From: Octopus sinensis
Lineage: Eukaryota
Direction: 5' to 3'
NCBI RefSeq assembly: GCF_006345805.1
Contig: NC_043007.1
Coordinates: 58,218,001 to 58,282,000 of the forward strand
Length of the DNA: 64,000 nt
A program made the position numbers and the translations under genes. Below the pieces are notes generated by a model that had not been told where the DNA came from, searched no databases, and saw nothing but the letters and a program-made list of their open reading frames with translations. The stretch's first letter is position 1, and each line of letters opens with the position of its first letter. This document shows, piece by piece, positions 9,621 through 61,514 of this stretch.

Positions 9621-10179
9621 CGGCATCCTATAATGCCATTGGTATCCGAGGTTAGAGTCCACTTCCGTTTCAAGCCCCCATGCTATGTTTAGCTGAATTC
9701 CTTATTAATTTCTGCCACCAGTGGCTGCCACAGCGGTAACCTAACATTAATTATGAACCTTGCCACCCTCCATTATTCCGCACCCACTTCCTCCTTCTCC
9801 ATCTGTCCCGTCCATTCTCATTACACAAAAAACCTCTCCACCATCATCACCATCATCGCCATCAAGACAGTAGAATAAAGCCAAATATATTGTCTAAGGT
9901 TTAATATAATAATTTATCTTTCCCTTACCTATCCCTCAGTTTCTCAACATAAAACTCATTCCTCCATTCAGATTCAACTTTTCTTATAATTCATTTGCGC
10001 ATGTCTATAAGTGACTGCCTTCCACTCATTCACAAAACACACAGCATCACACACTCAGACACACACGCGAAAGAACATAAATCACTCTACTCTTCTCAGT
10101 GGTCGCTCTTTCTAAGATACTAGTCTTTCACAAACACATACATATATACATACACGCACTGTCCTCTCTCGTGATCTTT

Positions 10180-10400
10180 TATCTTTTATTTTTTACCTAT
10201 TTCAATCATTAGACTGCGGCCATGCTGGGGCAACGCCTTGAGCTTTTAGTCGAATGAATCGACTCCAGTACTTATTTTTTAAGTCTTATATTTATTCTAT
10301 CGGTTTTTTGCCGAACCGCTAAGTTACGGGGACGCAAACACACCAACATCAGTTGTCAAGAGGTGGTGGAAGATCAAATACAAGCACAAGACTCACATAT
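10180..10400 (-). mobile_element. SINE family A, 3' half
   Basis: Reverse complement of GACAACTGATGTTGGTGTG...GCGGTTCGGCAAA...CCCCAGCATGGCCGCAGTC. Confidence 0.85.
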
Positions 10401-11934: not shown

Positions 11935-12125
11935 GTGTTGACAACCGATGTTGGTGTGTTTACGCCTCCATAACTTAGCGGTTCGGCAAAAGAGACCGAT
12001 AAATAAGTACTAGGTTTACAAAGAATAAGTCCTAGGGTCGATTTGCTCGACTAAAGGCGGTGCTCCAGCATGCCCACAGTCAAATGACTGAAACAAGTAA
12101 AAGAGTAAAAGCGTAAGAGAGTAAA
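11935..12125 (+). mobile_element. SINE family A, 3' half with (GTAAAAGA)n end
   Basis: Near-identical to 61280-61464. Confidence 0.9.
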
Positions 12126-13268: not shown

Positions 13269-13489
13269 TAGTATTGTTGTTATACATACATACATACAAG
13301 CATACGTAATGATAATAATAATAAGTGGATGTAAACACATGAGCAAAATAAGAATAAACAAAAACAAATTACACGAACGTATATAAACAGAAGATACAAA
13401 TATTACAGGCACCCCCCCCACACACACATACCCTAAATAAACATAGACGCACATAGAGATATAAGCATGTGCAAATGAAGACATACAAT

Positions 13490-13718
13490 AGAAATACAAA
13501 ATGGCTGACGGTTAGTAAAGAGAGACACAAATAAGAAAGAAGAAAACAAAGGACCACTGATGCGGTCACAGGAGTGTGACGAAAGAACTCTGGCAGAAAT
13601 AAGATTAAGATTAATGTAAAAAATAAATAACACTGAATCAAAATAACACCAAGTATATAGTGCGTATGTTTTTATTGGCTAAACTGGCAAAATGACCATT
13701 CCGAAATATAACAATATC
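13490..13718. repeat. Unclassified dispersed repeat, second copy at 23520-23740
   Basis: High identity between the two copies in this window. Confidence 0.9.
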
Positions 13719-13819
13719 ATTGTTTATTATTATTGTCATATTAACTATTAATATCATAATTATTATTTAATACCATCCGACAAAATGGGCGAAGAAGAAA
13801 TATTGGCACAATTGTATCG

Positions 13820-21205: not shown

Positions 21206-21520
21206 AGGCGCAGGAGTGGTTGTGTGGTAAGTAGCTTGCTTACCAACCACATGGTTCTGGGTTCAGTCCCACTGCGTGGCACCTTCTACTATAGCGTCGG
21301 GCTGACTAAAGCCTTGTGAGTGGTTTTTGTAGACGGAAACTGAAGGAAGCCCGTTGTATATGTATATATAAATGTATGTGTGCGTATATGGTTGTGCGTC
21401 TGTGTTTGTCCCCCAACATCGCTTGACAACCGATACTGGTGTGTTTACGTTCCTGTAAGTTAGCGGTTCGGCTAAAGAGACTGATAGAATAAGTACTAGG
21501 CTTACAATGAATAAGTCCTA
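21206..21520 (+). mobile_element. SINE family A, tail lost at (TA)n/RTE junction
   Basis: GGCGCAGGAGTGG..GTGTGGTAAGTAGCTTGC...GGTTCAGTCCCACTGCGTGGCACC head and body. Confidence 0.9.
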
Positions 21521-22659: not shown

Positions 22660-23075
22660 GCGTGACTGAGTGGTAGGAAATTCACATCCGGGTTCAGTCC
22701 CACTGCTGGACATTTAAACATCTAAACTAAAATATCGGGCCGACAAATGTTTTGTCTTGTCAGTGTATGTGTGTGTGTTTGTGTGTGCGTGTGTGTGTGC
22801 GCGTGCACGTGTGCATGCTGAGCCTGTGTGTGCGTGAGTGAGTATGTCTATGTGTATTTTTACGCTTCTGCTTGTCCACTACTGCCAACATTCGGCAACC
22901 GGTGTTGGTTTGTTTTACGCCTTGTAACTTAGCGGTTCGGCAAAATGCAGGACGACCGAATAAGTACCAGGTTTTAAAAACATATAATTACTGGAATCTA
23001 TTTGTTCGACTAAACCCTTTAAGGCTGTACCACAGTATGGTTGTAATCTAATGCCTGAAAGAAGCAAAAGATAAA
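22660..23075 (+). mobile_element. SINE family A, fragmented
   Basis: Head fragment GGGTTCAGTCCCACTGC and body GTAACTTAGCGGTTCGGCAAA...CGACTAAACCC. Confidence 0.7.
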
Positions 23076-23108
23076 AGATAGAAACATATACACGTTCATA
23101 CACACACA

Positions 23109-23340: not shown

Positions 23341-23404
23341 CGTTTATATATTTGTTGCGCAAGATTTTTTTTGTGAAGTCGTGTGTGAAAACAGATATTG
23401 TTAT

Positions 23405-23735
23405 ATTTCGGAATGGTCATTTTGCCAGTTTAGCCAATAAAAACACACGCACTATATATTTGGTGTTATTTTGCTTCAGTGTTATTTATTTTTTACATTA
23501 ATCTTAATCTTATTCAAATAGAAATACAAAACGGCTGACGGTTAGTAAGGAGAGACAGAAATAAGAAAGAAGAAAACAAAGGACCACCGATGCGGTTACA
23601 GGAGTGTGACGAAAGAACTCTGGCCGAAATAAGATTAAGATTAATGTAGAAAATAAATAACACTGAAGCAAAATAACACCAAATATAGTGCCTGTGTTTT
23701 TATTGGCTAAACTGGCAAAATGACCATTCCGAAAT
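23405..23735. repeat. Inverted repeat, about 110-bp arms and 113-bp spacer
   Basis: 23405-23514 is the reverse complement of 23628-23735; built from the repeat also found at 13490-13718. Confidence 0.92.
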
Positions 23736-23736
23736 A

Positions 23737-23797
<61 letters not shown>

Positions 23798-23954: not shown

Positions 23955-24315
23955 CATGCGGGACTAGTGTGGTAAAAAGCTTACTTCCCAACTACATGGT
24001 TCCGGGTTCAGCTCCACTGCGTAACACCTTGGGCAGAAAGAAGCCTGTCGTATATTTATCTTTATATATATATGTATATAACTGTGTGTGTCTTTTTGTC
24101 TGTGTTTGCCCCCTAGTACCGTTTAACAACCGATGTTGGTTTGTTTACCCCCCGTAACCTAGCGGTTCGGCAAAAATTATGATAGAATAAGTACCAGGCT
24201 TATAGAAAAAAAACGAAAAAAACAAGTAGTGAAGTTGATTTATTCAACTAAAAGTTCTTCAAGGCGATGCCCCAGCATGGCCGCAGTTAATGACTGGGAC
24301 TAGTAAATGATAAAG
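23955..24315 (+). mobile_element. SINE family A, near full length, diverged
   Basis: Head, (TA/TG) spacer, body and CCCCAGCATGGCCGCAG tail. Confidence 0.85.
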
Positions 24316-24941
24316 ATAACTATGTTTCTCGTTGCAGTGTTTTTATAACAAACACTGTCTATATATATACATGTGTGTGTGCGCGTATGTGTATGTGTTT
24401 GAGTTTCTCTGTTTGAGAGAGAAGGAGAGAAAGAAAGAGAGAGAGATTTCGCATACATATACATGCATGCTTCTGTGAATGATGGAATGCATGTTGAGGC
24501 ACAAAACATCATAACACACACTGACACTGTTACACAACCACAGGCACATAGGGACTCAGTGACTCATACACACATGCGCATACACACCTGCGTGCATGCA
24601 TGAGCAGACATATTGAAATAGTTGCAAAGACATACAAGTTTGTATTTAAAGCATTTCCGTTTCTTTATTAACAAATAGCAAAGAATAAACTATGCTGGAA
24701 ATAAAATGAAATCAATCACATAAGTTGTAAATATACATATATATATATATACATACACACACATATGTGTGTGTGCGCGTGTATGTATATATGCATATAT
24801 ACATGCATGTATGTATACACACATATACAGCGAGATACATGTATGAATATATATATGTGTATACGCATGTTTTGAAGCATATCCCTTTGTTTGTCAGTCT
24901 ATGTGAGTGAGCAGTTTTGGTTTCGTTTATGCGTTTTTCTT

Positions 24942-27068: not shown

Positions 27069-27214
27069 CGTTTGTGTATGTGTGTGTGTGTGAATGTGTG
27101 ATTATTATATAACAGGCAAACACATTTGTGTGTGTATGTACAAATGAATATACACGCAAACGTATATGCGCCTGTGTTAATGCATCTTTTAACCTCTTGT
27201 TCTTTTGGTCTTTC

Positions 27215-27340
27215 GAATACGGCCATGTCGTGGCAAACCTTACTGGGTTTAACTGAACACATCGATCCCTTCTTATTTTATTTTAGGCCTGGTACTTTTT
27301 TATCGATTCTTTTACCGAACCGCTAATTTACGGACACATA
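27215..27340 (-). mobile_element. SINE family A, 3' fragment
   Basis: Reverse complement of body and tail motifs (CCGAACCGCTAA, GTACTT, GGCCATG). Confidence 0.7.
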
Positions 27341-27529
27341 TACAAACCCGTGTGTGTGTGTGTTTGTGTGTGTGTGCGCGCGTGTGTGTCTGTGCGCGCG
27401 TGTGTATGTGTCATATATCATTTTACAGAGAGACATTCCAACATTAAGTAATAAATTAGTTAATATATATATCGTGATGATATTTATATTTATATAGCCA
27501 AAGAAATGGTTTTGACTGCGTGAGTGTGG

Positions 27530-29798: not shown

Positions 29799-29800
<2 letters not shown>

Positions 29801-30399
29801 GCAAAATTAAGGAACGGCCATAATAGGCCGTTCAACCCACTAGAAATAGCAGCCAAGGCTTCAACCGCAAAACAATATTAATTCCGTAAACCAGGAGAAA
29901 ATTTAAAAAAACATTTACCCCGTAATACTTTATACAATGCATCGTTTCGTCTATTTTTTTAATGGTAAAACAACCTGATTAAATTAAATCAAGCTAATCT
30001 TCCATAGGCCAATAGATTCATCAGTAAAGTAAGCCAGACGGGACAGATATTTTCACGAGGCAGCACCACTACTGTCTCGGCTATATCTGACCTAAAATTT
30101 TCAAATCATCAATCGTACTCGCGCCAAATTTATCGGCAAATATAGCTGCCGATTTCCATTTCGGATTTAAACAGAAAATTCATAATTAATCAATATAGGT
30201 GGCAGAAAATTCAGCAGAAATTATTTGCCACCAGCGGCCTAGTGGGAAAAAAATAAATAGTCAGAGACTATTAATAAATTCAACAGCAAAATTAAGGAAC
30301 GGCCATAATAGGCCGTTCAACCCACTAGAAATAGCAGCCAAGGCTTCAACCGCAAAACAATATTAATTCCGTAAACCAGGAGAAAATTTAAAAAAACAT
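29799..30399 (-). mobile_element. Retrozyme-like element: 485-bp period, identical 116-bp terminal direct repeats, internal hammerhead
   Basis: 29799-29914 equals 30284-30399; flanked by (TA)n; hammerhead at 29926-30031; at least five further hairpins; no ORF. Confidence 0.8.
29926..30031 (-). ncRNA. Type I hammerhead ribozyme with long stem II and palindromic stem III
   Basis: Stem I TACTTTA/TAAAGTA (7 bp); CTGATGA (30024-30018); stem II TCTATT/AATAGA plus extended hairpin; GAAA (29948-29945); stem III ACGATGCATTGT; GUA triplet, predicted cut between 29933 and 29932. Only deviation is A10.1-C11.1. Confidence 0.82.
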
Positions 30400-30504
30400 G
30401 ATTAATTATATATATATATATATACATATTGATATATGTACATATACGTATGTATATATGCATATATATTATTTACATTATTTATATATATATATGCACC
30501 GGTA

Positions 30505-30590
30505 GGACTGGGATCGAGTCATTCAACTAAAATACTTCAGCGCAGTGCTCCAGCATGGCCGCAGTCTAATGACTGAAACAAGTAAAATAT
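30505..30590 (+). mobile_element. SINE family A tail fragment
   Basis: GCAGTGCTCCAGCATGGCCGCAGTCTAATGACTGAAACAAGTAAAA. Confidence 0.8.
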
Positions 30591-30603
30591 TAAAGATTAA
30601 GAC

Positions 30604-32646: not shown

Positions 32647-32890
32647 TATAAATATATAGACACATTTATTTATACGCATATAAATATATAGACACATTTA
32701 TTTATACGCATATATACATGTATGTGTGTATGTATGTATATACATTGATATATTTAAATATATATATATAATTTTCTATATATCTATAGATATATTTATA
32801 CACACACACAGAGGCACACACACACACACACACCCACACATATATATAACATATATATATATATATATCATATATATATATTATATATAT

Positions 32891-33222
32891 ACATATATAA
32901 TTTTCATGAAAGATGTTAATCTCTCAAAAGACAATTTCTCTCTTGCTGAAAACAATTCATGAATCCTGAATATCTTACCGTTCCAATCCAAACCCTTCTA
33001 GCCTCATATCACGTACTTATATTCGTGAAATCCCTACATTTTCCCTCCCCAATATAACCGCCATCAACACATCTACACCTCTCATAACTACCGACCGAAG
33101 TTTCTTCATCTCCATTTTTTCCTCGCATATATATTCTTACTTCATGAAATGTTTTCTTCATTATTCATTTTCAAGTATTCATACACACAAACCACACACA
33201 CACACACACACACACATATATA

Positions 33223-33268
<46 letters not shown>

Positions 33269-33580
33269 TAATTTTCATGAAAGATGTTAATTCTCTCAAA
33301 AGACAAATTTCTCCTTGCTGAAAACAATTCATGAATCCTGAATATCTTACCGTTCCAATCCAAACCCTTCTAGCCTCATATCACGTACTTATATTCGTGA
33401 AATCCCTACATTTTCCCTCCCCAATATAACCGCCATCAACACATCTACACCTCTCATAACTACCGAAGTTTCTTCATCTCCATTTTTTCCTCGCATATAT
33501 ATTTCTTACTTCATGAAATGTTTTCTTCATTATTCATTTTCAAGTATTCATACACACAAACACACACACACACACACACA
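32891..33580. repeat. Tandem duplication, period about 371 bp
   Basis: Copies start at 32891 and 33262 and differ only by small indels. Confidence 0.92.
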
Positions 33581-33655
33581 TGTATATATACTCATGAATA
33601 CATGTACGTGCGCGCGTATGTGGGTGTGTTTGTTTATGTGTGATTGCAATAAATT

Positions 33656-36294: not shown

Positions 36295-36500
36295 GTCTTA
36301 CCTTTTACTTGTTTTAAGCCTTTCGACTATGCGCCCATGCTGGGGCACCACTTTTAAAGGGTTTAGTTGGAACAAGTCAACCCCGGTGCTTATTTTTAAG
36401 CCAGATACTTATTCTTTTGATTGTGGTTATCTTTGTGCCGAACCGCGAAGTTACGGGAACGTAAACAAACCAACACCGATTTTTAAGTACAGGCACAAAC
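36295..36500 (-). mobile_element. SINE family A, 3' half
   Basis: Reverse complement of body and tail motifs. Confidence 0.8.
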
Positions 36501-51829: not shown

Positions 51830-52750
51830 CTACTAGAAAAAAATTGACCACATCAATACCAAGAAAAAATACCAAAGAAAAACCTGAATCATACTGACAT
51901 CAACAAAATCTGGTCCCATTGATAGTAGTAAAATTTGAACCACTCTCGCACCAACATATCTGATCGCTATGGCATATAAGAAACAGCTTATTGAGAAAAG
52001 CTAGAAGGAATAGACCTTGAAAGAAATGTGAATGAAAGAAAAAGACAAAAATAGGAAATACACGCCAGTATTCTGAAAGCAAAGCTAAACATCGATATCC
52101 ATTCGTACTTATTTAGGTAGCAAGCTCTGTAGTAAAAATGGAGAAAAACTTCCTAAAAATAATAAAAAATGACAATATCGAAACAAGAGAGGCAGTGAAT
52201 AAACAGTATAGAAGAACGGGTTGTTTTAAATCGTGAACAAAATCTAAAATGGAAATATTCAAGTGAGAAGAAAGAGAAGGAATTATTGTAGAAACAGCGA
52301 AAAGCAACAGCAAAAACAGATATGATGGAGAATATTTTCTAGAGTAAGAACTACCACGAAGTCATAAAGGTTCTGGATATGTGAAATCCAACAGATTTTA
52401 TAAACCAAAGAATGACTTCATCTGGAATCTAATGTGCTTTTATCGAGATGTATGTGAAATGAAAATAGTTGTTAGCAGGCAACGGACAGCGAAAGAGAAG
52501 AAATCAAGTAAACTATATTTATGAGCAGCAAATAAGATAACAGAGATAAAAGTATTATAAAACAAAAAATCACTTAACATTGGAACAATTCTGGAGAGAA
52601 ATAGCAGCGCAGCAAGTAATCCAGGTACTACAAAATCTTTATCATATCTGAATTTGCACAAGGCTGAAATTTTGGAGGAAATAATAGCAAATAATAGCAA
52701 ACCACGCAAAAAAAATTGATGCAAATATATTTCTTAATTGAATGAAAAAA
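51830..52750 (+). mobile_element. Possible decayed N-terminal part of the downstream R4-type LINE
   Basis: A-rich, Lys-rich coding-like composition on the same strand as 53950-55600; no diagnostic motif recovered. Confidence 0.3.
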
Positions 52751-55600: not shown

Positions 55601-55642
55601 ATTCAAAGTTCTTACTTGAACATATGGACATAATCAAATATA

Positions 55643-56512
55643 CGTGCTCTGATCAATAAGTATCCGGATTGTTGCCATAGTAACAAAACTGAGGCACGCA
55701 GAGTAAAGCCGCTTGAAACAGATTCACCTTGAACTCCGTTGTGCATGCTCACTAAGTTTTAACATTCTAAATCACTTCTGCTGTTTACAGCAGTGCTGGG
55801 AAGGAAGGCGTGTAGTGTGTGATCGTCGCATTGTCCATGACAAAGTTGAGCAGACAATCTGCAACAAATGTTTCCAAAAGCTTGGCGATACCTGCTCAGA
55901 GACCTACGCAAAATTTTCAAAATGTTTTCATCGTACTCCACACAATCAAGACCTTTTGCAACTGAAACCTGAATGTATTTTTGGTCAGCTGAAAGCAGTT
56001 TTAGCACAAACTTGGCATCTCATACCCAAATCCCCTGTGATGATGGAATTGAACTGAACCGTAACAAATCTGCAAATCTTCTGATAACTCACGGATAAGG
56101 ATTCGACGATTTCCTCTCACAGCACATCTGCGATGTTTTTCTCAGTTCTGCTGGTTGCGGGTCTCACAAAACGTTCGTCAATATTGACATTTTTTCGACC
56201 ATCTTGGAAACGTCTGAACGACTCGTACACTTGTGTGCGGCTCATACACAACTCATCATACACTTTCTGTAACTTTGCGTAGACATCTAAACAGGCATCG
56301 CCTTGACAACTTTCTCTGTCATGGTCAAAGCGACGACCACACTCTACACTCCTTGCTTCCAAGCACTGCTGCAAATAGTAGAAACTAGAACGTTAAAACC
56401 TAGTGTCCATGCAGAGCAAAGTTCAAGGTTAATTTGTACAAAGCAGCTTCACTCTGCATGGTTTAGCTGTGTTACTATAGCAACAGTCCGGATATTTATT
56501 GATCAGACCTCG
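55643..56512. mobile_element. Mariner derivative made of two 5' ends in inverted orientation
   Basis: TIRs TA-CGTGCTCTGATCAATAAGTATCCGGA / TCCGGATATTTATTGATCAGACCTCG-TA. Plus arm encodes KVEQ.IC.KCFQKLGDTCSETYAK; minus arm encodes CLDVYAKLQKVY.E.CMSRTQVYE.FRRFQDGRKNV..DER..RP..SRT...DLGMR. Confidence 0.87.
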
Positions 56513-57369
56513 TACATAGGGTATACGTTTGAACACACACGTGTTCTATCGTGACACGTAAAATACGCGAGTGAAAATTTATCCACATGCACACCTATAT
56601 ATCTACATCAATCAATGCAGGTAACCACAAAGATTTGAGTTGCCTTGACATAAACAAAAAGTCCTAGCTAGTTTTTAAGTATTTCTGAGACATTTTATAG
56701 AAACATACGCACATTCTCATGTTCATAGATATGCAATACACACCCATACACACGCACACACATATACACACACATATACACACACACACACACACACGAC
56801 ACTTGAAACATACGCAGGATCAGACATACCAATGTGTGACTCCGTACGCAGCTAGAAATATACATATACATTTCGATGGATGTATATGTGGGCAAATATA
56901 CACGCACACAATTCGCATACACACACAAACATTCACACACATACACACTGACATACACATGCACAGGTACAGGAGCGACATACATATGCATGCACAAAAG
57001 GTTTATGCATCAATCATACAAATTCAGAGACACGCACTTACACTAGGTGCAACGGACACACATAGAAAAAACTAATACATAGATGCACACAAAACATATA
57101 CATACATACAAACATACATACATCCATATACTTAATCATATACAAATACAGAAACGTATGCACTTTGAGGTTCATACATGAATGTGCACAGAGATAAACA
57201 TATACACTAAAGTAATACAATTACGCACTCAAACAGATACAGATTTATACAAACTCACGCATATATACAAGCATGTAAAAGAAGATACACTTTAGCCAGT
57301 CACTAACAAGCAAACATATATATATATATATTATATATGTATATAGATGTGTGAGTGTGTATAAAGATA

Positions 57370-57436
<67 letters not shown>

Positions 57437-57437
57437 C

Positions 57438-57485
<48 letters not shown>

Positions 57486-57492
57486 GTGTGTG

Positions 57493-57527
<35 letters not shown>

Positions 57528-57529
<2 letters not shown>

Positions 57530-60500
57530 ACACCCCAAATATCTCACCAGTGCTTCTGCTGAATGTCAGAGGTCTGGTGAAACCCACTAATATGAGTAAA
57601 ATTCCTTACCTTAGGGACTTAAGCACAAGCAACCATGCAATATGCATAGCGCTGACTGAAACGCACCTGTCAAGCAGTATAGCAGATGCAGAAATACACG
57701 TACCAAAGTATACTGTTTTTCGGTCAGACAGGAAGGAAAGAACTCATGGTGGGGTTGCCCTGTACGTCCGTGAAGATGTCACACCCATAGTACTGTTGAC
57801 ACACTCAAACTCAGTCTGTGACACACTGATAGTACACATGAAACAACCGAAAATAGTAATATGTGTCACATATCGGCCACCAGACACCCCTAGTCATGAA
57901 GGAGTGTTTGAAGATAGCCTCAGAAGAATAGAAGAAGTCCTGGACAAACTGGACCAGGGTAACACCATTCTACTGCTGGGAGATTTTAACCTTCCGAAAG
58001 TCAAATGGCCAGATGGCCATCTCCTCCCTGAATGACATCACTTGAACAGAGACAGACAGAGTCCTTGTTGGCTCTCACACGCAAGTTTTTCATGGAACAA
58101 GCAGTGCTTCGGCCAACAAGAGGTGAGAATGTCTTGGACCTCTGTTTCACAAGCAACCCGATGCTCATCCACAACATAATGGTAACACCTACAATTCTCT
58201 CAGATCACAACTTAGTAGAGGTAATGATATATGGTATGAGAGAGTTAGTTGAGACGCAGCCATTAGAAAATACCACAGGCCTATCCAGTCTAAACTTCCA
58301 TAAGGCAAACTGGAAGAAGATCAACGAAGAGATCCGAAAACATGACTGGAGTGACTTCATCACCACACAAGAGACCAACACACATTTCCAACATTTCATG
58401 ACAACAATACAGAACATATGCCATAAGTTTGTCCCGGAGAAAAAAGCCAGCGGCATAGGAACGTTATTCCCAGAGACAGGAAAATACTTATGAGGCGAAG
58501 AGCTAAGCTCTCGAAGCAACTGAATGCACGGCAGAGAAACAATAAGGGACTCCACCTGAAACTTTTTGAAACGGAAACTGCACTCAAACTTTCCTATGAG
58601 AAGGAGAGGGCAGAGAGAGAAGCCAGGGCCATAGAGAATATTAAAACAAACCCTAAAGCTTTCTTTAAATTTGCGAAAGAAACCACCTCGGTACACTGCA
58701 AGATTGGCCCACTCTTTGATAAAAAGGGCTCTCTAACTGAGGACCCCCAAGGGATAAGTGAAATACTAAAGGAACAGTATAAAAGTGTGTTCACATCCCC
58801 TCTGGGGCACATGCAAATCACAAACCCAGAAGTTTTCTTTGATGCCACAACACTCCAAAACCAAACAACCATCGACCACATAGACATAACAGAGAGGGAT
58901 GTAATATCTGCCATAGAAGAAATGAGAATAAACTCAGCTGCTGGACCAGATGGATTCCCAGCAGTCCTCCTAAAAACATGCAGGCATGCCCTAGCGGGAC
59001 CACTGAAGAAGCTCTTCAGTGGTTCCTTGGCTAACGGTAAACTGCCCAGGGCGCTAAAAGAAGGCACCATATGCCCTATCCACAAAGGAGGGAGTAGAGC
59101 AGAGGCCAAAAACTACAGGCCAGTCTCCCTGACGTCACACATAAGTAAGGTCATGGAACGAATCATCAGAAAAAAACTGATCACGTTCCTCGAAGAAACT
59201 AACCGTCCTCACTGACACACAGCATGGCTTTCGCCCAGGAAGAAGCTGCCTTACGCAGCTGTTACAACACTACGACTGGGTACTGAAAAACTACTGGATC
59301 GCTCACAGGTGGATGTGGTATATCTCGACTTTGCGAAGGCCTTTGACAAAGTCGACCACGGAGTGATATGTCACAAATTACTCAGACTCGGCATAACAGG
59401 AAAAGTAGGTGAGTGGATACATGACTTCCTGAAGGACAGAAGCCAGATGGTTGCAGCCAATGGAGCCCTCTCGGGAAAGACACCAATAGCAAGCGGGGTG
59501 CCACAGGGCACAGTCTTGGGACCCTTGCTGTTTTTGGTGGCGCTCTCTGACATGCCCTTGGTAGCACAAACAACATCCCTCACTAGCTATGCTGATGACA
59601 CAAAGGTAGCACAGGCAATTAAAAACCCAGCTGATGCTGACCTTTTACAACAAGATCTGGATGCCATATACAAATGGGCTGAAGAAAACAACATGCAATT
59701 TAATGCTGGTAAATTTCAAGCCTTACAATATCAAGCTGTAAACACATATACATTACAACACAACTATACTGGTCCAGGAGGGATCGAAATCCCAGTATCG
59801 AAATCAATACGGGACCTGGGGATAGACATGGGTGACGATGCATCTTTTTCTTCACACATCGCGAAGGTGGCGACAATGTGCAGACGGCTCACTGGCTGGA
59901 TCCTGAGGACATTCCGGACAAGAGACTGCGAGACCATGTTGACACTATGGAGGACATTTGTCCTAAGCCGCCTAGACTACTGCTCCCAACTGTGGTCACC
60001 GCATAGTGTCAAACTAACCACAGAGCTTGAGACAATCCAAAGACATTTCACCAAGAGGATTTCCACCATGAAAGAAAAGAACTATTGGGAGAGGCTTAGG
60101 GAACTCAATTTGTACTCCTTGGAACGAAGACGAGAGAGATATGCAGTGATATACATATGGAAAATCCTGGAGGGACTAGCACCAAATTTTGGAATTGAGA
60201 GCTGTTCCAATCCCCGTACAGGTCGTCACTGTGTGGTGCCAAAGGTCCCGTCTTCCACATCCAGGGTAAGGAGCAGATACTGTAATAGCCTGGGGTTCAG
60301 GGGCCCTCAGCTGTTCAACAAACTGCCAAGAAAACTAAGAGATCTACATGATGCGGATGTGGACATTTTCAAAAAACATCTAGACAAGCTGCTTTCCGGG
60401 ATCCCAGATGAACCCACTGCAAGGTACGAAGGTAACCTAAGGGCAGCAGCTACAAACTCTCTCTTAGATCAGTGGCCAGCCACGGCAAACTGGACTTAGA

Positions 60501-60576
60501 GAGGGTAGCAACAAGGGTGGTGCCCCAGCATGGCCTCAGCCGGATGGCTGAAACAAGTAAAAGAGTAAAAGAGTAA
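57528..60576 (+). mobile_element. CR1/L2-group LINE, 5' end at start of APE domain, intact 3' tail
   Basis: APE plus RT ORF, short 3' UTR with stem-loop and (GTAAAAGA)n end; (TA)n on both sides. Confidence 0.95.
57550..60499 (+). pseudogene. LINE ORF2 (AP endonuclease-reverse transcriptase) with four 1-bp frameshifts and no internal nonsense codon
   Basis: [51 protein letters not shown]; KNYRPVSLTS, QHGFRPGRSCLTQL, YLDFAKAFDKVDH, SGVPQGTVLGPLLF, SYADDTK, RDLGI. Frameshifts near 58030, 58455, 59206, 59290. Confidence 0.93.
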
Positions 60577-60590
60577 TATATATATATATA

Positions 60591-61002
60591 TCCCACTGCG
60601 TGCCATCTTGGACAAGTGTCTTCTACTATAGCCTCGGGCCAACCAAAGCCTTGTGTGTGGATTCGGTAGACGGAAACTGGAAGAAGCCCGTCGTATATGT
60701 ATATATATATGGGTGGGTGTGTGGGTGGGTGTTTGCCCGTGTTTATAAGCTAAAGAATGATCTCATCTGGAATCTAATGCGATTTTATTGAGATGTATGT
60801 GAAATGAAAATAGTTATATAGCCGCGTGATAACCGATAGTGGTGTGTTTAAGTCCTCGTAACTTAGCGGTTCGGCAAAAGAGACCGGTAGAATAAGTACT
60901 TGGCTTACACAGAATAAACTCTGGGGTCGATTTGCCCGACTAAAGGCAGTGCTCCAGCATGGTCGCATTCAAATGATTGAAATAAGTAAAAGAAAGAAAG
61001 AA
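60591..61002 (+). mobile_element. SINE family A, 5'-truncated, with a 73-bp foreign segment at 60743-60815
   Basis: Homologous to the adjacent copy 61020-61464 except for the replaced segment. Confidence 0.88.
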
Positions 61003-61019
61003 GATATATATAAATATAT

Positions 61020-61197
61020 CTGGAGTGGCTTTGGAGTGTGTGAGCGGTAAGTAGCTTGCTAACCAACCACATGGTTCCGGGTTCAGTCCCACTGCGTGGC
61101 ATCTTTGGCAAGTGTCTTCTGCTATAGCCTCGGGCCGATCAATGCCTTGTGGGTGGATTTGGTAGACGGAAACTGAAAGAAGCTTGTCGTATATATG

Positions 61198-61246
<49 letters not shown>

Positions 61247-61463
61247 TTGTGTGTCTGTGTTTGTCCCCCTAGCATTGCTTGACAACCGATGGTGGTGTGT
61301 TTACGTCCCCGTCACTTAGCGGTTCGGCAAAAAGAAACCGATAGAATAAGTACTGGGCTTACAAAGAATAAGTCCCGGGGTCGATTTGCTCGACTAAAGG
61401 CGGTGCTCCAGCATGGCCGCAGTCAAATGACTGAAACAAGTAAAAGAGTAAAGAGTAAAAGAG

Positions 61464-61464
<1 letters not shown>
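61020..61464 (+). mobile_element. SINE family A, full length
   Basis: tRNA-like head with B-box-like GGTTCAGTCCC, (TA)/(TG) spacer, body, LINE-like tail CCAGCATGGCCGCAGTCAAATGACTGAAACAAGTAAAAGAG. Confidence 0.93.

Positions 61465-61514
<50 letters not shown>

Follow-up and report, generated by a model that had tools for sequence, protein, structure and literature searches.

At the 3' end of a long interspersed nuclear element (LINE) of Octopus sinensis we found a tail that is also carried by the most numerous short interspersed nuclear element (SINE) of the same region. The window analyzed is a stretch of 64,000 nucleotides (contig NC_043007.1, positions 58,218,001 to 58,282,000), and the LINE, a copy of a retrotransposon without long terminal repeats (non-LTR), occupies positions 57528-60576 (+) of it, with an open reading frame (ORF), ORF2, that encodes an apurinic/apyrimidinic (APE) endonuclease, a reverse transcriptase (RT) and a C-terminal domain. 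The SINE, called SINE A, is a composite element of around 445 bp with a CORE-like body. We propose, with good confidence, that a CR1-like LINE lineage of octopods carries a tail with two RNA hairpins, and that the commonest SINE of the window bears a homologous module and was copied through it in trans.

The ORF2 of the window LINE finishes with a TAG stop codon at 60497-60499 and is followed by a 3' untranslated region (UTR), or tail, of 77 nt (60500-60576, +), whose SINE-shared part covers approximately 60513-60576. The tail ends in ...GGGTGGTGCCCCAGCATGGCCTCAGCCGGATGGCTGAAACAAGTAAAAGAGTAAAAGAGTAA, where direct reading reveals two and a half direct repeats of the 8-nt unit GTAAAAGA (60557-60576, +) without poly(A), separated by AAAC from the second hairpin, and a (TA)7 tract (60577-60590) lies at the 3' junction. 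When compared by BLASTN, positions 60513-60576 were 86% identical over 64 nt to 61396-61458 (E ~1e-15), at the end of the full-length SINE A copy, and 84% identical to 12053-12116, in another SINE A copy; five further SINE tails aligned more weakly to the LINE tail. The core CCAGCATGGCC, with at most one mismatch, was found eight times in the window, versus 0.15 occurrences expected from shuffles. The similarity between LINE and SINE begins at GG(Y)GGTGC, and an element with the sequence GTCGAnnnnnTCGACTAAA, absent from the LINE, precedes every SINE tail. The terminal unit GTAAAAGA is common to the window LINE, to its relative on the metagenome scaffold L001 and to SINE A, which it ends at 61440-61463 and 12097-12122, and this is the strongest specific link of SINE A to the sublineage formed by the window and L001 LINEs. 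A previous sequence-only reading of the window had quoted these LINE and SINE sequences, and the SINE tails that it described were confirmed at 61397-61463, 12054-12122 and 30540-30600. It had also named the SINE with this tail as the most abundant one, which agrees with our counts, as no other interspersed repeat of the window has as many copies as the SINE superfamily, represented by around 12 copies or fragments across the 64 kb and by up to eight other copies per 200-nt chunk.

The same tail was detected just 3' of ORF2, or of homologous coding sequence, in five other LINE 3' ends, which come from two metagenome scaffolds (L001 and L006) and three Argonauta hians copies (L002, L008 and a tail-only fragment held by the opposite strand of L008). 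The proteins of these relatives are 73% (L001), 69% (L006) and 63% (L002 and L008) identical to that of the window LINE. In the DNA 3' of the ORFs, the tails read GGCGGTGCCCCAGCATGGCCACAGCCtgcgGGCTGAAACAGAGTAAAAGAGTA in L001, GGTGGTGCACCAGCATGACCACAGCCgactcGGCTGAAACATTTTAAAACATTAAAACATTAAAC in L002 and GGTGGTGCTCCAGCATGACCACAGCCatatGGCTGAAACCAATTAAAGAATTAAAA in L006, at distances from the ORF2 stop codon that go from 9 nt (L001) to around 45 nt (L006). In L001 the LINE homology passes from coding sequence to tail without a break, and L008, a second Argonauta copy with 83% nucleotide identity to L002 over 3 kb, also has the tail present. Since other LINE copies have it, the tail is a property of an octopod LINE lineage, not a stray piece of a SINE, which answers the doubt raised in the sequence-only reading, that other copies of this LINE could be without it. 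The LINE sample comprises only about five copies with 3' ends, and when JGI metagenome contigs and IMG/VR were scanned for the exact tail pattern (CCAGCATGRCCNCAGYCN{3,5}GRCTGAAAC), 0 matches were obtained.

The region is rich in SINE copies, and a 5'-truncated one starts at 60591, 14 nt past the LINE tail, so that it was worth testing whether the two elements meet by chance, either because the "LINE tail" of the window is a SINE tail fragment lying after the stop codon or because the LINE was inserted beside a SINE. However, four other LINE copies, all from other sources, carry the tail just 3' of ORF2, and no SINE body lies upstream at the two Argonauta hians loci among them; the SINE-specific GTCGAnnnnnTCGACTAAA is missing from the LINE tail; and one stem has a C-G variant in all the full LINE tails, the corresponding pair being U-A in seven of nine SINE tails. 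Chance insertion was rejected on the presence of the tail in L001, L002, L006 and L008, and we regard it as extremely improbable. Another candidate, that the tail was formerly coding sequence, came from a tblastn alignment that extends past the stop (QQGWCPSMA versus QQSWHASVS of the relative L004); the C-termini of 20 homologues have no such motif, so this extension was attributed to chance.

Distant relatives of the LINE (L003-L005, around 50% amino acid identity) do not have the shared tail; their UTR is very short and they too end in repeats, 10-nt tandem duplications, which makes the tail an invention of the octopod lineage, in a family whose members end in terminal repeats. At some stage the LINE lineage acquired the tail and, since homology alone gives no direction, template switching or recombination with the SINE could have given the LINE its 3' end, instead of the SINE borrowing from the LINE. 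Against this transfer, LINEs with only 63% amino acid identity, from another octopod superfamily (Argonauta), already carry the tail, which implies an old residence in the LINE, and the SINE-specific sequence upstream of the module was found in no LINE examined. We consider this reverse direction improbable, and a functional LINE-SINE partnership is intact under either direction of transfer.

The tail folds into two adjacent hairpins, both by single-sequence folding and by unguided RNAalifold analysis of 13 tails. Hairpin 1 (60516-60535, +), with the structure GGU.GUGC[CCCA]GCAU.GCC, comprises 7 bp, a G/G mismatch inside the stem and a YCCA loop, and is the most conserved portion of the tail, with the consensus GG(C/U).GUGC[YCCA]GCAU.(G/A)CC. 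Hairpin 2 (60537-60550, +), CAGCC[GGAU]GGCUG, could be extended by an extra pair, U60536-A60551, and follows the consensus CAG(C/U)C[4-5-nt loop]G(G/A)CUG. The two hairpins constitute the minimum free energy structure of the 40-nt trimmed tail in every LINE copy and in the young SINE copies. The terminal stem-loop announced in the sequence-only reading is therefore present at 60537-60550, but it is not a single hairpin, as hairpin 1 lies upstream of it.

The stems are conserved through substitutions that keep the pairs. In an analysis of 15 tails, standard pairs occupied 89% of the cells, versus 22-39% after sliding the 3' partners by 1-3 columns, and both-sided changes were detected at 4 of the 12 pairs. 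Over both pair counts made, the ranges were 89-90% and, after sliding, 21-39%. The five full LINE tails have C-G as the fourth pair of hairpin 2 (C60540-G60547 in the window), and U-A takes its place in seven of the nine SINE tails, in such a way that the change from CAGCC/GGCTG to CAGTC/GACTG noticed in the sequence-only reading is real and separates these two groups; the same pair is unpaired in the tail-only fragment of Argonauta. One pair of hairpin 1 is C-G in the SINEs and L001, U·G in the window LINE and L008, and U-A in L002 and L006, a series that is the classic stepwise route, and the extra closing pair of this hairpin is either U-A or C-G among the LINEs. The tails of the window, L001 and L002 LINEs and a young SINE tail show 5-8 differences per comparison, and all of them keep the 12 pairs intact, an outcome reached in 0.5-4% of simulations in which equal numbers of substitutions were placed at random (P 0.005-0.04 per comparison). 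Pairing falls to 6-10 of the 12 in old SINE copies, as expected for dead copies, in which the selection acting on source genes is gone.

Several points weigh against the proposed pairing of LINE and SINE, and some of them concern the hairpins themselves. The covariation score of the 15 sequences was reached by 10 of 500 shuffles, a moderately extreme value for which the tool itself warns that related sequences can produce it without any structure, and the support from covariation is modest because there are few independent events: in hairpin 2 it is essentially one evolutionary event, to which the second series in hairpin 1 is added. The z-scores of single-sequence folding were mostly weak (-0.4 to -2.8). 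These values would also fit hairpins without a function, the similarity then reflecting only shared descent, with pair-keeping changes arisen by chance. By contrast, the preservation of every pair despite the 5-8 differences, the both-sided or stepwise replacement at three pairs, a hairpin-2 loop that varies freely over a fixed stem, the z-score of -4.3 of the Argonauta tail and the loss of pairing in old, dead SINE copies all speak for function, and we think it unlikely that the hairpins lack one. The two-hairpin structure thus appears well supported by conservation and modestly by covariation.

Other adverse points come from the variable parts of the tail. The hairpin-2 loop changes with the LINE lineage (GGAU, UGCG, GACUC/GACUG or AUAU) and is AAAU, UAAU or GAAA in the SINEs, and the terminal unit is AAACATTA in the Argonauta LINE, AATTAAAG in L006, and ATAAAAGA and others in SINE subfamilies different from SINE A. 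The loop of the window LINE (GGAU) differs from that of the SINE (AAAU) at two of four positions, and loops can be a specific determinant in stringent LINEs, as documented for ZfL2-1 and ZfL2-2 (PMC4176376). The CAGUC/GACUG stem of the SINE was seen in none of the five full LINE tails sampled, and the SINE tail differs from that of the window LINE at 7-8 of 39 columns, while LINE tails from different octopod lineages differ from each other at 5-6, so that the SINE is as distant from the window LINE as the LINE lineages are among themselves. Every full LINE tail has CAGCC/GGCUG with its own loop and mostly its own terminal unit, by which the LINE subfamilies appear to diversify their recognition module. 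It is conceivable on these grounds that the SINE tail comes from, and is mobilized by, a sister LINE subfamily with CAGUC[AAAU]GACUG, the window family being only a cousin and not the amplifier of SINE A. We concede a modest chance to such a sister subfamily; against it stand the exact terminal unit GTAAAAGA common to the window LINE, L001 and SINE A, the lack of any LINE with the U-A stem (among only about five copies), and the tolerance of other stringent LINEs to stem changes that keep pairing. The partnership proposed in the sequence-only reading therefore stands at the level of the LINE family, through tail homology and residence, and not for the particular copy in the window, which is dead and has a different loop; the direct mobilizer may be a sister subfamily.

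The remaining points against the pairing refer to the window copy, to its class and to the head of the SINE. The window LINE cannot be active, since it is 5'-truncated and interrupted by four frameshifts. Its "CR1-like" designation is a putative one, taken from domain content and tail architecture and not from an RT phylogeny, and the database matches to its RT ORF carry no clade names, being unnamed or misnamed, for instance as "ribonuclease P/MRP subunit RPP40". Regarding the SINE, ARAGORN detected no tRNA, and no Rfam tRNA match was obtained over 60480-61480 even at E<=5.

Having weighed these points, our preferred reading is still that the LINE lineage copied SINE A through the shared module. 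By analogy with UnaL2, ZfL2 and amniote CR1, we infer that the hairpin module of the LINE RNA would be bound by the ORF2 protein of the lineage, and that the terminal repeats would then serve to start target-primed reverse transcription at a nicked target. A SINE RNA, presumably transcribed by RNA polymerase III, would present the same module and be copied in trans, a mobilization deduced here from homology, as is standard in the field, and the LINE subfamily responsible would be a relative of the window copy or its own family.

The tail agrees in several respects with the stringent LINE-SINE pairs of the Ohshima/Okada model, as homologous 3' ends, a constant LINE tail, a conserved stem-loop and common terminal repeats without poly(A) were all found. 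In amniote CR1, a hairpin in the 3' UTR, taken as the RT binding site, is followed by an 8-nt microsatellite without poly(A) (PMC8665684, PMC5729268), and tRNA-headed SINEs such as TguSINE1/PittSINE, with CR1-X1_Pass, and the tortoise Pol III/SINE, with CR1, copy the LINE tail with few diagnostic substitutions (PMC8665684, PMC5729268). The octopod element comes nearest to amniote CR1 in architecture, with its single ORF2 with APE endonuclease and RT and its hairpin followed by an 8-nt repeat without poly(A), the relatives also ending in tandem units of 8-10 nt. However, it has two adjacent hairpins, and the sequences of hairpin and octamer are unrelated (GTAAAAGA in the octopod element, ATTCTRTG in amniotes).

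UnaL2 of eel, an L2-clade element whose partner is UnaSINE1, has a single hairpin, terminal repeats of around 5 nt (TGTAA) and a conserved loop G. By comparison, the octopod element has two hairpins, a hairpin-2 loop that is not conserved among the LINEs and terminal units of 8 nt. The CR1/L2-type class named in the sequence-only reading agrees with the CR1-type domains and tail architecture, and the UnaL2-like features are absent. In UnaL2 and ZfL2, the 3' stem-loop and the short terminal repeats are needed for retrotransposition and the tail is common to the partner SINE, and the L2 ORF2 of zebrafish (ZfL2-1, ZfL2-2) recognizes the stem in a general and the loop in a specific manner (PMC4176376). 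Such a bipartite recognition would fit the octopod tails, in which the stems are fixed and the loops differ by subfamily.

Among mollusks, HCD-SINEs of bivalves and gastropods (CORE, V, Meta, Deu) have been paired with CR1, CR1-Zenon, L2 or Nimb LINEs from tails of 35-61 bp with 72-95% identity to LINE 3' ends (PMC11481361, PMC4758252, PMC4824008). The partnership proposed here was deduced in the same way, and cephalopods were outside those studies.

The coding part of the window LINE is distributed over three frames. The N-terminal part of the APE-type endonuclease lies in frame 1 (57528-58035, +; Pfam Exo_endo_phos, E=1.5e-6), the end of the endonuclease and the start of the linker in frame 3 (58032-58493, +; C-terminal part of Pfam Exo_endo_phos_2, E=5.4e-5), and the rest of the linker between endonuclease and RT, with the start of the RT, in frame 2 (58490-59215, +; from tblastn and three-frame translation). 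A 396-amino acid ORF (59309-60499, +) contains the RT (Pfam RVT_1, E=8.7e-19) and the C-terminal domain. Apart from these three families, Pfam gave no match to an RNase H domain in the LINE. The frameshifts are located near 58030, near 58490 and, as a -1/+1 pair, at around 59200 and 59290; because of this pair the RT motif QHGFRPGRSC (LTDTQHGFRPGRSCLTQLL) sits in frame 3 for around 90 nt (59190-59300) and an apparent in-frame stop is seen at 59213. The truncated 5' end abuts a (TA)n tract (57245-57527). In tblastn searches, orfB of L004 showed 45% identity across 58619-60535, and amino acids 421-484 of its orfA were matched by 57541-57732, so that relatives extend at least 1.2 kb farther upstream of the endonuclease than the window copy.

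With the RT ORF as query, 4038 homologous proteins were retrieved, the best being P0001, from a metagenome scaffold (73% identity), followed by P0002 from Argonauta hians (63%), and a search with the last 110 residues added P0121 (69%). One match, P0123 (WP_347046854.1), is labelled "hypothetical protein, partial [Escherichia coli]" and is 69% identical to the C-terminus of the window ORF2; it is most likely cephalopod DNA that contaminates a bacterial assembly. Octopod-type LINE copies with 69-76% protein identity were also found on ENA "metagenome" scaffolds (L001, ERZ23491053; L006, ERZ23499275; L007, ERZ23491054), and cephalopod DNA was therefore present in those samples. The L007 copy (P0122) was left out, as its LINE homology ends inside the ORF and is followed by GC-rich foreign sequence, probably in a chimeric metagenome contig.

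The full-length SINE A copy (61020-61463, +) was delimited by BLASTN and folding. Its head and CORE-like part (61020-61190) are followed by an internal (TA)n(TG)n microsatellite (61191-61261), the 3' body (61262-61396) and the LINE-like tail (61397-61463), in which hairpin 1 occupies 61399-61418, hairpin 2 (CAGUC[AAAU]GACUG) 61420-61433 and the repeats 61440-61463. The 5'-truncated copy (60591-61001, +) starts at around position 68 of the consensus, has a decayed LINE-like tail (60941-61001), and is 88% identical to 61020-61465 in both the head and the 3' body by BLASTN. A SINE A 3' half (11938-12122, +; tail 12054-12122) is 91% identical to 61279-61465, and a copy without tail (21213-21518, +) is ended by a (TA)n tract. 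The internal microsatellite was seen at one position in three SINE A copies (61191-61261, 60695-60744 and around 21358-21400), suggesting that the tract is part of the element or that the SINE consists of two units joined there. In the truncated copy, a spacer in place of the internal microsatellite (60742-60815) has a 91% identical copy 8 kb upstream, at 52397-52470.

Related subfamilies are represented by a 3' fragment at 30504-30600 (+), with hairpin 2 CAGUC[UAAU]GACUG, tail at 30540-30600 and different terminal units; by a copy at 10175-10360 (-), with hairpin 2 CAGUC[UAAU]GAUUG, which includes one G·U pair, and ATAAAAGA as terminal unit; and by a copy with tail at 23971-24316 (+), identified by sequence comparison. 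An older related copy (36298-36487, -) has a hairpin 2 shifted by one indel, AGUC[GAAA]GGCU, and two old, decayed copies with tail were recognized by sequence comparison at 22896-23085 (+) and 27188-27348 (-). In the head of SINE A, a B-box-like GGTTCAGTCCC was noticed by eye near 61079. The stretch at 61100-61140, after this head, may resemble the MIR core and thereby the CORE domain. Among octopus SINEs, Ohshima and Okada reportedly described OK, OR1 and OR2 in 1994, and the tRNA-Core and tRNA-Deu types are those that expanded in Octopus genomes.

Tracts of (TA)n lie directly 3' of the LINE tail in four of five LINE copies (60577-60590 in the window, from 1766 on in L001, from 4884 on in L008 and from around 612 on in L006) and after three of nine SINE tails, the background being 5.7% of window positions that precede (TA)4. 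The three cases in the window are adjacent and therefore not independent. Such an association could arise if insertion favors TA microsatellites or if slippage takes place where the 3' end joins the flank.

Other repeats were observed in the window. The segments 13401-13800 and 23389-23744, 94-97% identical and in both orientations, have no relation to the SINE and represent either a repeat of young age or a duplication that occurred locally. Positions 32800-33600 hold a tandem repeat whose units, of around 400 bp, are 95-98% identical. Just upstream of the SINE fragment at 30504-30600, two stretches of around 115 bp (29799-29914 and 30284-30399), 485 bp apart, are 100% identical and may represent a recent duplication or an assembly artefact. 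An inverted repeat pair (55638-55754 and 56359-56517, 77-79% identity) surrounds short ORFs, among them 56117-56374 (-), which by eye resemble the N-terminus of a mariner transposase and gave no Pfam match at E<=0.01. At the gathering threshold, Rfam returned only low-complexity noise over the whole window, as it did at E<=5 over 60480-61480.

SINEs are the main transposon class of Octopus, with around 40% of the transposable element content and a dominance of tRNA-Core and tRNA-Deu types, and their expansion is regarded as a defining trait of genome evolution in octopods (PMC8967140); the LINEs proposed as candidates for activity are RTE and Dong, not CR1-like (PMC9115989). In the literature searched, no publication that names a LINE partner for octopus SINEs was found, the pair perhaps being already catalogued in Repbase or Dfam, and nothing relevant came from literature queries with the tail sequence or with SLEKRRL, a C-terminal peptide motif of CR1. 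The concept is not new, as the pair is an ordinary instance of the shared-tail rule known from vertebrates and bivalves. A broader proposal, rather doubtful when taken as a whole, is that a CR1-like LINE lineage, and not RTE or Dong, drove the octopod SINE expansion; its RT would read a bipartite two-hairpin module with stems held by selection for more than 100 million years (Octopus to Argonauta), while the hairpin-2 loop and the 8-nt unit would vary by subfamily and set which SINE each LINE copies, with (TA)n tracts possibly targeted or generated by the process. A partner of CR1-like type whose two-hairpin tail is defined would offer a handle for dating and classifying SINE subfamilies, for annotating 3'-anchored LINE copies and for designing a trans-mobilization assay.

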